A stretch of 61,045 nucleotides of DNA, filler included, from Hausera hauseri (lineage: Eukaryota), in assembly GCA_046269625.1 (NCBI GenBank). It is 11 parts of 11 records of this genome, joined end to end, with 100 filler letters (N's around TTAATTAATTAA, not from the genome) between each part and the next. Parts side by side here need not be neighbours in the genome. Positions count along the whole stretch, not along the records: positions 33,500 to 38,390 come from JBJURY010401479.1; 10 more parts are not named here. One strand, written 5' to 3'. Positions 33,400 to 38,490 of the stretch are shown here, piece by piece. Under the pieces are notes generated by a model that had not been told where the DNA came from, searched no databases, and worked only from the letters and a program-made list of their open reading frames with translations. Position 1 is the stretch's first letter. Every line of letters starts with the position of its first letter. Both the position numbers and the translations under genes were made by a program.

Positions 33400-33858
33400 N
33401 NNNNNNNNNNNNNNNNNNNNNNNNNNNNNNNNNNNNNNNNNNNTTAATTAATTAANNNNNNNNNNNNNNNNNNNNNNNNNNNNNNNNNNNNNNNNNNNNA
33501 AAATATCAGAATGTGATCATTTCTCTGGCTACAAGACAATAAATATTCGTACAACTCGAATTTCAAAGTGCCACTGCATGACCAAAATGATTCCTTGATC
33601 CAACAATTTATTTCTTCACCTAAATCAGTAATACGATTGATGTTCTGTCAAAAGGAAAATATCCATTGAATCCCTTAGACTATATGTACATGTGTATATA
33701 TGTGAATTTTTTATTAAATAAAGATTGTAAAAAAATCAATAAATAAGTTTAGACGTTATTTTCTTACTATTCATTGTGACTTTATCTATTCATTTTCTTT
33801 CTATTCATATTGGAATTTATACTATAAATATTGGAATTATAGCCAAACTTAACAAACA

Positions 33859-35225
33859 TCATTTGCAATGTACAAGTAAATTGTAGTGGGACAAAAAGTC
33901 TGAACCCAATATAGGTGTGTGTACATTAGTTATTGTAAATTTCAATGTGAATGTGTTTGTGAAGTGCGGGAGAGTGAATGTCAATGTGGTGACTCCAAAA
34001 ATTTGTAAAGGTTCACCGGACGCAGTGAATAGTTGCTTTTGTGAAATGTAAATGTTGAATGTGTTGTGTTGGTGGCAGTAGAGAGATTGCTGCACCGGTT
34101 ATCGCCTTTGCTAGGACTTGCCGTGTGTCCTAGCGGCGAAATTAGTTTGTTGGAGATGGTGAGTTTCTACTACTGTTTTGTGTGAGCTTATTAGTGTTGG
34201 TCTTATTGTGTGTGCTGTAGGTACAGCCAGGTTGGCATGTGTGCTTTTGCGCCAAATTTTGAGTGGTAGATGCAAACGATATTGCTTGTTTTAAAACCAG
34301 TGGAATAAAATTTATAACCGATGCAGCATTTCTGAGCATTTTTGCCAAATTTACTATGATAATAGCAAATAAATGAGCGCGTGGGCGACGGCGACCGTCT
34401 TTGAAGTTGATTAAATACATTAGGGGAAGCAGGTCTAGAAAAACCCCGTCGAGGTAGTGTTAATGCGTTTAGTTTGTCGTTGATGTTGTTGATTGTTTTT
34501 GCTATGTTTCATTTTCTATGCGTAATTGCGCAATTTGTTGCTGCAGCACTGCATTTTGTTGTTGTTGATCTGTTGTCAATGCTGCAGAGATAGTTGGTGC
34601 TGCATGTGAGGGCAGTACTTCGTATGCCTTGTCTGCCAGTTTGGCTAGCTTGTCAAGAGCTGTGGAGTCTTCGACCACGGTAAGCAAAGCTCTTATTTGA
34701 AGGGGCACTGCATTTAAAAAATAACGACGAAGAAGCTTGAGACTGTGTTCAGAGGTTAAGCCAAGGGCGTTGAGGTGAGACAAGGATGTGCGAAGGAATT
34801 CAGAAGGCTTCTAAAGGCTCATGGCGCTGTCGTTAAAGAAACTTTGAATGATTGAATCAATTGAAGGCTCAGTAAGCTTGAGAACGGCATTATAGAGTTG
34901 TTATACGGGTCAGCGTGCTGTGGGATATCGATTATATTAGTGATTTTAGTTTTGATGGAATCTAGTAAGTGGAAAAAGAGGCTTTTGGGTTTGGCTAAAG
35001 AGTCGAGGACGTTTTGCGATTGGAGCCAAAATTGGTGAATTTTTTAAGCAATTTGAGTAGAATTTTGGCTATCGAGAAAATATTCGGTGCAGAGTAAATG
35101 AGTGAGGAGGGTATGTTCTGTAGAAATGTTGGAAGCGCTGTGTTTGTGTAAGTGAATAATGGGGAATTGTTGTTTGGTGAGTTTGTCCGTGGTGCCAGTT
35201 GTGGGCGACGAATCCATGCCACCAT
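33859..35225 (-). mobile_element. Family B gypsy gag and partial protease (degenerate)
   Basis: VPLQIRALLTVVEDSTALDKLAKLADK and PILGSDFL; homologous to 30968-32400. Confidence 0.88.
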
Positions 35226-35699
35226 GGATACGGAAATGAATATAAAGACAGATGTTGGTTGAGGAAGATTGTAGAGTTCCAGCGAGGGGTACTAGAGATC
35301 CGTTGTGTGTAAGGTAAAAATCAGAGTGGAGTAGGGTAGAAATGAAAGTATAAATGGTCGCAGTGTGTAAGTGCAATGCGGTGTGTATATGGACATGTTT
35401 ATTATTTAAGAAAAAGAAGATAGAGAAGGGAGAGGTAATGTTCCTGGGGGCGTGTTGCGGAACTGAATCGAAAGGCGCCGTCTGACCCACTGGCGCAGGG
35501 TGGGCGGCTGGGACCTCAGCCTCGCAGCGGCGGGTTCCAAATTCCGGGATAACCGACCTCCCCACCTGTATTGTTTTTCCTTCGGTTACTGTGACATTTA
35601 TCCTCAAAAGTAACACACATTCCTTTATATTAATAATGGTAAGAAACATTACCTTTTTATTAATCCACCCAATATTCATCACAATCAAATTTGTACATC

Positions 35700-36309
35700 G
35701 TCTTTCGTCTGATTTGAAATCAAATCGCAATTTTTTTGGTCCAAGGAGTGATCTCTCTTTGTTAAGGTCATTCACTTTTTCCCTCAAAGCGTAATTGAGA
35801 ACGTGTGTAGCAGTGTGATTTTGCATTATAGCACTACGTCGAGTCCCATGAACATCCAAATTCACCAAATCTCCAATTCGAAGTATGCCCTGCTGCACAT
35901 GACCAATGTGTAACATGTATCCACTAAACAGTTGCACATTTGTCACCTCAAAGTCACCAGCAAAAGCGATCAAGTTGCCTAAATCTGCCACTTGTCCACC
36001 TTGTTCTGCATAGAAGTTTGTTGAATCAAGAACGACACCGACTAACTTCTCAACGTTGGTCACTTGCTCAAGGAATGCACTTTTTATTTTAATGGCAATA
36101 ACTTTTGCCTGACACGGATTAATTTCATATTGTCCTTTGTTGTCAAATGAATAAAAGCATTTTCTACTGTCGTATGTTGATCTCATTTCTTGAGTCAGAA
36201 GGAAATTTGTATCGTGGACCTCCAACTCCAATTTGTATACATTATCACCAACAACTTGGTCACCAGAACTGACGATCTTACGGATTTCTTGGAACATTTT
36301 CATTTCCAC
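35700..36309 (-). pseudogene. AARS1: Captured alanyl-tRNA synthetase fragment
   Basis: GVVLDSTNFYAEQGGQVADLG, NHTATHVLNYALR, KLRFDF. Confidence 0.92.
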
Positions 36310-36313
36310 GTCC

Positions 36314-37601
36314 TTAACATAAAATCCTCAATTCTGAGCAGACTTTTAGTATAACCAACAAGCCTCTAGCAAATGCTTCTACACCGTATGCAATACGGCC
36401 AGAGACAGTTTCACTGTATTTTAAAAATTCCAAATGTGCAGCTAATTCAAATGCACCAGCACTCGGAACAACGCATTTGTCTTCAATAGCATTTTTAACG
36501 GCCTTTAATCCATCATTAATATCATCATTGATTTGTGTTAAAGTATGTTTATTCGGTCCGGCATAACCAAAACAATCTGGTGCTAGTTCATCAACGCAAT
36601 TTACGGCATAACCACCACTGGCTAACGCCATTCGTTCCATGTTTCTTCGCTTAGCACATCGAAGAGCTAAAATTCCTTCTTTGGCAAGCATATCCAACGA
36701 CAAAGGATCAGTTTCTTTTTCGTTTATCACAACAAAATTATATTTGGAATCTCCTTGAGCTGCAGATTCATCACAAACCTGTCTCTTCAGAGCTATAATT
36801 TTTAAACTCGTTCGTCAATAAATTGTCTTTCGGCTTAAACTAACTTTTCTTGTTCAACTGCACTCTTGTAGAAAAAACTAATGTTTATTTCAGTTTTTTC
36901 ATATTACAGCGACACAATGCAAGTTAAGATAAATGCATTTTAACCCTCTTCGGCATGTCCGGATGACGACCTCCAAGGTCGAGTACTAATCCATTGATCA
37001 ATTTATTATCCATATCTCGTTTATGTTGCATTTGCATAATTTCCACACTATGAAGATCCAGTGCAGAATCTGGATCATAAACACTCAATACAGCGTCTAC
37101 GATATGATCGCTCAACATGTTAGCCAAATCGTAGTGCAATTTCGTCTTGACGGACGTTCCAGCGACGTTAACTAAAGTTTGACGATCGAGCTTTTCGATA
37201 TCTCAAAACGGTTTCGTTATTTTCATCCTTTCTGAGACTTCAAGTGCCTTCACTTTTGCAAGATCGAAACCTTCGGTAATTAATGAAGGACGAAGTGACT
37301 GCATATATAGTCCATCATACATTAATCCATCAGCCTGCTTCAATAATTCTGCGATCATCAATACGATGCTTGTCGTTCCATCACCGGTAATATCATCTTG
37401 AGCAGTTGAAACTCGAGCAATTAAACTAGCATCTTTGGTTAATTTAATATCTCCAGCTCCAGATACCAACATCTCTAAAGTTCCTTTCGGGCCCAAATGG
37501 CTCTTAAAACATCCGAAATGCCTTTATAAGCTGTAAGATTGATATTGATTCTGTGACTTCGCATATTCAGCTTTGGGATTTAATGCAGCTATTGACACCA
37601 T
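36314..37601 (-). pseudogene. CCT6: Intronless chaperonin CCT6 (TCP-1 zeta) copy with frameshifts and internal deletions
   Basis: [66 protein letters not shown]. Confidence 0.93.
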
Positions 37602-37626
37602 CGATGAGAAATCTAGAAGTTTTAAT

Positions 37627-37637
37627 TTCTGACACCA
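37627..37637 (-). promoter_or_regulatory. tRNA-Leu-type PBS (TGGTGTCAGAA), 25 nt upstream of the CCT6 ATG
   Basis: Minus strand reads ...ACA-AT-TGGTGTCAGAA, the same motif as at 20924. Confidence 0.65.
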
Positions 37638-37639
37638 AT

Positions 37640-38374
37640 TGTTGTGGTCCATTAAAACTGACATGTTAAAATAAATATCGGATTGAAGACAAGATTCCAA
37701 AATGGTAGTATCAAAAAAATCAAATTAAATATTGCAAAACGAAATTGTGTAATTTTTTAGAACAGAATACAAAAGTCAAAATGGCAGCAAAATGCACGTG
37801 TGTACAACAATTGTCATTGAAGTCATTATCAATTTCGCAGTGTTAGTGTTTCGTACAGTCCTTAGTAGACGTGAGGTATTCCAACACTGGGACCTGCAAG
37901 TGGTAGAGCAGAAACGTGGATATTAAAAGTAGATTATTGTACGAGATAATCGGTAGTCTTCGTCATTTTCTAATAATTGTAAGTTATGAATAGACGCACG
38001 TTGTATCGGAGTATTAAATTGAGACGTAAGACTTCTTAAAATTTCACTAACTCGATGGTTAACTAAACCATCGGATATTTCTGAGTGATCTTTACTTTTA
38101 ACTGACATTGGCTGAGAAAATCGCCGAAGCGAATTTGATTTCGAATGTGATTGATCGCATGTCTCGCAATTTTGCGGTATCATTTATTATCGATGCCAGC
38201 AGAACATGCAATTATAAAACAATAGTTTTGTAAAGACCATCTAACGGAATCTGAAAAGGAAATTATACTGAATGGAGGATCGGGGCCCGACTATGGGCAC
38301 GAGGTGGCGGCAACGGACGTCCGGCCGTGTCCAACCAAATGGGCCAGAAGGCGCCGGCCACTGTGGACACCACA
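37640..38374 (-). repeat. Putative family-B 5' LTR, 735 bp (TGTGGTGTCC...ACA)
   Basis: Conserved GC-rich start shared with 6957 and 18661; CA end followed by the PBS. Confidence 0.7.
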
Positions 38375-38490
38375 CATTGACTCTTACAAGNNNNNNNNNN
38401 NNNNNNNNNNNNNNNNNNNNNNNNNNNNNNNNNNTTAATTAATTAANNNNNNNNNNNNNNNNNNNNNNNNNNNNNNNNNNNNNNNNNNNN

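Follow-up and report, generated by a model that had tools for sequence, protein, structure and literature searches.

A decayed locus in Hausera hauseri with the features of a chimeric retro-copy: a putative long terminal repeat, pieces of two host mRNAs and gag- and protease-like remnants

Positions 33500–38390 of a 61,045-nucleotide (nt) window, joined with filler from 11 parts of 11 records of the Hausera hauseri genome (GenBank assembly GCA_046269625.1), come from the contig JBJURY010401479.1 of approximately 4.9 kb. This piece is the sequence that was analysed, and all counts given below refer to it. We propose, with a probability of roughly 55 per cent, that it holds an old, dead chimeric retro-copy, in which the end of a long terminal repeat (LTR) element is fused to pieces of host mRNAs and to a broken gag–protease region. 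All element-related features lie on the minus strand and are co-oriented, in the order LTR-like unit, primer-binding site (PBS), CCT6 (CCT zeta), alanyl-tRNA synthetase (AARS), a 340-nt unit, a tRNA-like stretch, a gag-like remnant and a protease-like remnant (Table 1). The order, orientation and colinearity of these parts, the pattern of their truncations and the decay that affects every part of the chimera can be read directly from the DNA. In an initial annotation of this DNA, the LTR-like unit, PBS, CCT6 and AARS had been described as a co-oriented series, and our own reading confirms it.

Comparison of the sequence with orthologues bears out the identity of the CCT6 copy, claimed earlier, and agrees with its reported lack of introns. 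Three pieces of the copy match the Pfam family Cpn60_TCP1 (E-values of 2e-17, 5e-17 and 2e-29), and its best matches among solved structures are to animal CCT zeta (E-value of approximately 1e-48), with yeast zeta at 6e-30 and other subunits much weaker. The named members of the matching CCT6 clusters are from fish, plants and a nematode. When full-length CCT zeta is compared with the piece by tblastn, a single colinear path extends through three frames from residue 1 to approximately residue 456, with no intron-sized insertion relative to orthologues; the in-frame insertions are small (5 and 6 amino acids [aa]). Disabling lesions comprise four in-frame stops and five frameshifts. Additionally, the copy differs from all orthologues by in-frame deletions of 14 aa (42 nt) after 'LTKD' (at approximately 37430) and of 30 aa (90 nt) between 'GYAG' and 'PNKH' (at approximately 36560), which may go back to exon skipping or a cryptic intron in the source mRNA, or may have arisen later. 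At its 5' end the copy is complete to the ATG, and at its 3' end it is without the last approximately 75 codons, the 3' untranslated region and poly(A).

The AARS fragment that had been reported downstream of CCT6 was also recovered, both as a match to PF01411 (E-value of 2.5e-20) and by tblastn with AARS proteins, to which it is colinear over approximately 250 codons; it is approximately 40–45 per cent identical to many eukaryotic alanine-tRNA ligases. Both ends of the gene are missing, two frameshifts lie near the end of the fragment, and there is no poly(A). Across the CCT6 and AARS cargo, the largest insertions relative to orthologues measure 15–27 nt, and neither cargo junction has an A-run. 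The two cargo segments are alike in composition (GC of 0.38 in CCT6 and 0.37 in AARS, GC skew of +0.19 in both) and unlike the element parts. They are fused directly, head to tail, in a short run of codons ('AQNSGF' in CCT6, 'RGL.VD' in AARS) in which both proteins read G-F/L; the join is placed to a few codons and not to the base, for which the parental genes would be needed. AARS homology ends at 'KTIQ' (35566), exactly on a break in composition, and the GC-rich stretch beyond it was rejected as a continuation of AARS, since it scored below shuffles. Also rejected was a 30-nt GT..AG stretch within AARS (35662–35633) as a retained intron, because its removal fits the orthologues no better than its retention.

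An open reading frame (ORF) of 421 aa (35044–36309, minus strand) runs from AARS through the GC-rich stretch into the gag region. It was considered as a fusion gene and dismissed: the frame past AARS has no homologue, and the only matches in the search were distant AARS fragments, with no chimeric relative among them. The frame stays open past AARS because the strand is G-poor and offers few TAG or TGA codons.

On the 5' side of CCT6, reading of the sequence confirms the arrangement given in the initial annotation, a 735-bp TG..CA unit, then a PBS, then 25 nt and the ATG at 37601. The unit starts with TGTGGTGTCC at 38374 and ends in ...GGACCACAACA at 37640 (minus strand); its first 110 nt (38265–38374) have 65 per cent GC, and the remainder is AT-rich, at 34 per cent GC. 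An AT dinucleotide (2 nt) separates the end of the unit from the PBS-like TGGTGTCAGAA. PMC7997516 prints an antisense probe for mouse tRNA-Leu(CAA) whose first 11 nt are the same as this 11-mer, which is therefore complementary to the 3' end of tRNA-Leu(CAA), including the CCA. By our own estimate from base composition, an 11-nt match of this kind is expected approximately 0.002 times per tRNA species in the piece and fewer than 0.1 times over all species. Because of this low chance expectation, and because the 11-mer is placed exactly where CCT6 homology starts, it is likely to be a real PBS. The 25-nt spacer that follows could be either a short CCT6 5' untranslated region or an element leader.

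The terminal inverted repeat of the 735-bp unit is weak (TGTGGTG-TCCA versus TGTTGTGGTCCA), with a chance match in 16 per cent of simulations (P = 0.16); an 86-aa ORF inside the unit has no homologue and no domain in the protein databases and Pfam; and the unit has no sequence relationship to the left flank. The 8-mer TGGTGTCA occurs within the PBS (37637–37630) and is repeated at the CCT6 start codon (37600–37593), and TGGTGTC is found at the 5' tip of the unit (38372–38366). As a mark of template switching the 8-mer is not significant, since an 8-mer common to adjacent windows is found at 8 per cent of positions of the piece.

The cargo is interrupted by stops and frameshifts, and so are the gag and protease remnants, as seen in the frame map and the translations. 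The chimera is therefore genomic and old and not a cDNA contaminant, and the many disabling mutations rule out both such contamination and a mix-up with functional genes.

An LTR-like unit with its PBS, an mRNA without its 3' end, a second mRNA without either end, no poly(A), a uniform sense orientation and an element downstream together form the signature of reverse transcriptase copy-choice among co-packaged RNAs. The copies are partial and 3'-truncated, without poly(A) or a target-site duplication (TSD) of the L1 type, as in LTR-mediated retrocopies. A second LTR and a 4–6-bp integrase TSD are absent from the piece, which may reflect later truncation. The polarity of the truncations excludes an origin through long interspersed nuclear elements (LINEs). 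LINE-derived processed pseudogenes are, as the present cargo appears to be, intron-free copies of housekeeping mRNAs, but they retain the 3' end and poly(A), are 5'-truncated and have TSDs, whereas the CCT6 copy reaches back to the ATG and has lost its 3' end, and neither poly(A) nor a valid TSD is present.

We infer that the chimera originated by template switching inside a virus-like particle, that of an LTR retrotransposon with tRNA-Leu as its primer. While synthesizing minus-strand DNA, the reverse transcriptase would have left the element RNA and copied co-packaged cellular RNAs in turn, namely an internal stretch of AARS mRNA and then CCT6 mRNA up to or near its 5' end, with a mature tRNA-Leu, copied from its CCA end, as a possible third template. 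The enzyme would then have returned to the element RNA beside the PBS, giving a provirus-like DNA in which LTR, PBS, CCT6, AARS, the 340-nt unit, the tRNA-like stretch, gag and protease followed one another, and in which gag would belong to the same element as the 735-bp LTR. After integration, the 3' half, that is, everything beyond the protease (reverse transcriptase, integrase and 3' LTR), would have been lost, and all remaining parts would have decayed together.

Table 1. Features of the piece, listed in minus-strand order (positions are those of the window)
Feature	Positions	Strand	Basis
Putative 5' LTR, 735 bp, TG...CAACA	37640..38374	-	Sequence, composition
PBS-like 11-mer TGGTGTCAGAA	37627..37637	-	Identity to tRNA-Leu(CAA) antisense probe
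25-nt spacer, PBS to CCT6 ATG	37602..37626	-	Sequence only
Processed CCT6 (CCT zeta) pseudogene, codons 1 to ~456 of ~531	36322..37601	-	Pfam, structure alignments, tblastn, frame map
Internal AARS fragment, end of catalytic/tRNA-binding domain into start of editing domain	35566..36321	-	PF01411, tblastn
340-nt unit, TG at 35564, CA at 35225	35226..35565	-	Composition
tRNA-Leu-like 36 nt, sense, ending ...CACCA	35190..35225	-	Probe match
gag-like remnant, three frames	34206..35219	-	Frame translations, protein-atlas leads
Retropepsin-like remnant, ending after ...PILGSDFLSHYNLLVH	33862..34129	-	Protein-atlas leads, motif reading
Tandem repeat ATTTTCTTTCTATTC, period 15, 3.1 copies, AT-rich flank	33758..33808	.	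TRF

Between the cargo and the gag-like remnant lies the 340-nt unit, for which a leader, a second LTR and a further captured RNA are all possible identities. The sequence GGTGGGGAGG starts at 35566 (minus strand), positions 35566–35450 (117 nt) have 67 per cent GC, and the rest of the unit is C/T-rich. The initial annotation had treated the GC-rich stretch as a leader, a status that the sequence does not establish; the stretch opens a TG..CA unit that is followed by the sense tRNA-Leu-like segment. The piece is otherwise AT-rich, and its two GC-rich blocks (38265–38374, 110 nt; 35450–35566, 117 nt; 65–67 per cent GC) each mark the 5' border of a TG..CA unit. No sequence similarity links the two blocks, and they were rejected as structured or known RNAs, with no match in Rfam and no unusual fold.

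In the tRNA-like stretch, an ungapped comparison of the plus strand of positions 35190–35225 with the antisense probe for tRNA-Leu(CAA) gives 26 matches in 36 positions, a score that is reached, with either Leu probe and on either strand, in 0.4 per cent of Markov-random pieces (P = 0.004). Because the probe matches the plus strand, the gag-sense strand reads the tRNA's own 3' end, ...CACCA; the stretch is thus in sense orientation and is not a PBS. Neither ARAGORN nor the Rfam tRNA model calls a tRNA at 35190–35225, where the T-stem pairing is lost. This stretch may derive from a mature tRNA-Leu that was copied, beginning at the CCA end, as the third RNA to be captured, an origin that would fit both the all-sense mosaic and the tRNA-Leu primer; a sense tRNA-Leu-like 36-mer with CCA is as expected of an RNA copied as a template. 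The stretch may also be a relic of a rearranged PBS. As a further alternative, the 340-nt unit could be the LTR of a second element, with TGGTGGCA (35224–35217), a weak match, as its 8-nt PBS.

That alternative is part of a wider explanation by juxtaposition at the DNA level, according to which a retro-copy consisting of LTR, PBS, CCT6 and AARS was later joined by a nested second LTR element (a 340-bp LTR from the TG at 35564, with gag and protease), followed by deletions, so that gag would be unrelated to the capture. The two LTR-like units are unrelated in sequence, as such a history would have it, and the 340-nt unit has TG and CA at its ends and, much like the 735-bp unit with its block of 110 nt, opens with a GC-rich block of approximately 117 nt. 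The TG of the 340-nt unit is exactly the point at which AARS homology ends, yet the unit itself is without a second copy. TGGTGGCA directly follows its CA, but an 8-nt PBS-like match is expected approximately three times per piece by chance, and the better-supported tRNA similarity at this place is wrongly oriented for a PBS. Since juxtaposition also needs at least three independent events, all of which would have to keep one orientation, we regard it as unlikely.

The region assigned to gag and protease differs in composition, its sense strand from 35449 to 33862 being strongly C-rich and G-poor (skew of -0.37 to -0.59). The gag-like translation reads '...KPSEFLRT...LLRRYFLNAVPLQIRALL...LDKLAKLADKAYEV' and includes two knuckle-like C-x-Y-H-S-K-F-G motifs on the minus strand, CYYHSKFGKNAQKC (34367–34326) and CIYHSKFGAKAH (34274–34239). 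These motifs are 93 nt apart, and the second is broken by a frameshift. Protein-atlas leads for the gag piece are DUF7041 (0.84) and Retrotrans_gag (0.81), and its AlphaFold model is all-helical and of low confidence (pLDDT of 59). The retropepsin-like translation, 'GAAISLLP ... TPILGSDFLSHYNLLVH', has as its leads RVP (0.94), RVP (0.93) and RVP_2 (0.93). Neither piece has a Pfam match up to an E-value of 10, the gag piece has no homologue in the protein search, and the protease piece has no relative in the PDB. The gag and protease previously placed downstream in the same orientation are thus upheld by motif reading and atlas leads, and not by Pfam, homologues or PDB structures; they are probable remnants of an LTR-type element. 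Because reverse transcriptase, RNase H and integrase are all absent after the protease remnant in the piece, the 'Gypsy' class cannot be assigned from it, and the label of the remnant stops at LTR-type.

At the 3' boundary, the initial annotation had placed the end of the element at 33777 and had taken the pentamer CATTG, found at 33772–33776 and 38375–38379, as a possible TSD. Neither proposal was retained. The 4.9 kb contain seven copies of CATTG, and the probability of at least one occurrence in the 363-nt left region is 0.44 (3 per cent if the adjoining TG is required). Moreover, the left copy lies within a tandem repeat that spans the proposed end at 33776/33777. Copies of CTATTCAT are found at 33767, 33786 and 33801, on both sides of that end, with 0.22 expected in the stretch examined, so that the sequence runs on through it without a break. 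The 85 bp at 33777–33861 resemble the flank, with a GC of 0.22 compared to 0.28 in the flank and 0.42 in the element. The CATTG repeat is a chance occurrence and not a TSD, and from the tandem repeat and the flank-like composition we place the end of the retro-derived part at approximately 33862, without a 3' LTR.

This outcome bears on the initial view, in which the locus belongs to a single gypsy-type family with systematic capture of host mRNAs between PBS and gag and subsequent spread of the chimeras, and in which CATTG is its TSD. The co-orientation of LTR, PBS, cargo, gag and protease is what such a family would produce, and secondary retroposition of chimeras of this kind has been documented (PMC5131818). 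With the TSD refuted, with no 3' LTR, reverse transcriptase or integrase, and with heavy decay in the single available copy, we find this view improbable, and the piece itself lends no support to systematic, recurrent capture. No other copy turned up in viral and metagenome collections or in protein databases; specifically, the 24-mer spanning LTR and PBS and the gag and protease pieces are absent from viral and metagenome contigs, although the collections probably do not hold this genome and their silence says little. We give similarly little credence to the proposal that the 735-bp LTR and its tRNA-Leu PBS represent an active, or recently active, family that would regularly acquire host RNAs just 3' of the PBS, mRNAs as well as the very tRNA that primes it, and would have spread as non-autonomous chimeras.

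A different origin for the same segments would be patchwork repair, in which free cDNA fragments (a strong-stop or partial element product, mRNA and tRNA copies) were end-joined where a chromosome had broken, without a chimeric provirus at any stage. Every segment is indeed a fragment, a tRNA piece is present, and neither end of the locus has element termini with a TSD. End joining should yield random orientations, whereas the five or six segments seen here all point the same way; an LTR complete with U3, R and U5 and with its PBS behind it would be a product of finished reverse transcription; and CCT6 starts right after that PBS. Patchwork repair therefore seems to us a doubtful explanation.

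Several observations weigh against a single chimeric retro-copy. The 735-bp unit has no second copy within the piece, in which a 3' LTR is also lacking, and the putative LTR identity of this unit is less secure than that of the PBS. With neither a second LTR nor a valid TSD, integration as a unit is hypothetical. The 340-nt unit beside gag has no sequence similarity to the 735-bp unit, so gag and protease may be separate from the chimera, nested in it or merely adjacent, and their own identification comes from atlas leads and motif reading only. Close parents of the cargo were not found: the best identity for CCT6 is 62 per cent (HMMER search of the whole library with the CCT6 piece), and the best match for AARS in protein collections is 46 per cent. 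Finally, the contig is short and ends 16 nt past the 735-bp unit, and the junctions are taken from the assembly, which leaves room for an assembly chimera that joined unrelated repeats and genes in a 4.9-kb contig. Such an artifact would be very surprising: the CCT6 and AARS parts carry the stops, frameshifts and deletions of pseudogenes and are not the functional, intron-bearing genes, and no repeat that could mislead an assembler is common to the junctions.

The proposed retro-copy has close parallels. Tan et al. (2016, Genome Res 26:1663; PMC5131818) describe LTR-mediated retroposition in flies, mosquito, fish, chicken and mammals. Among the cases are chimeras of two parental genes and copies truncated at the 3' end, poly(A) and TSD are lacking, and the switch points show microsimilarity; Ty1, Bs1 and HERV-K are cited there as precedents. 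Like those chimeras, among them the two-gene CG4799_CG11924_r of Drosophila, the locus in H. hauseri has partial, apparently intron-free mRNA copies inside what would be LTR-element sequence, 3'-truncated, without poly(A) or an L1-type TSD, and from more than one parental gene via successive switches. Unlike them, its cargo lies between the PBS and the gag region instead of replacing part of the ORFs, only one LTR survives, and the copy is old and decayed and not polymorphic.

Maize Bs1 (cited in PMC5131818) similarly has fragments of several unlinked host genes, three cellular genes in its case, in sense orientation in the interior of an LTR element. Bs1, however, has both LTRs, several copies with the same switch points and transcription, features that the present piece does not display. 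Retroviral oncogene transduction and the yeast Ty1 pseudogenes (Derr 1991; Schacherer 2004; both cited in PMC5131818) share with the proposed origin the copy-choice of reverse transcriptase between packaged element RNA and cellular mRNA; those cases have been tied experimentally to active elements, whereas the present one is known from its sequence alone.

The locus is a chimera of a kind already documented in animals, and no gene-capturing family is shown by it. Being one decayed copy, it gives rise to no gene and puts no open question to the test; wider interest would arise only if the same LTR and PBS adjoined different cargos elsewhere in the genome. If our interpretation is correct, the locus would add one more case, from an AT-rich and poorly sampled eukaryote, in which the reverse transcriptase of an LTR element has shuffled pieces of host genes, and the primer tRNA, if a sense copy of it is indeed included, would serve as a useful marker of chimera formation inside the particle.

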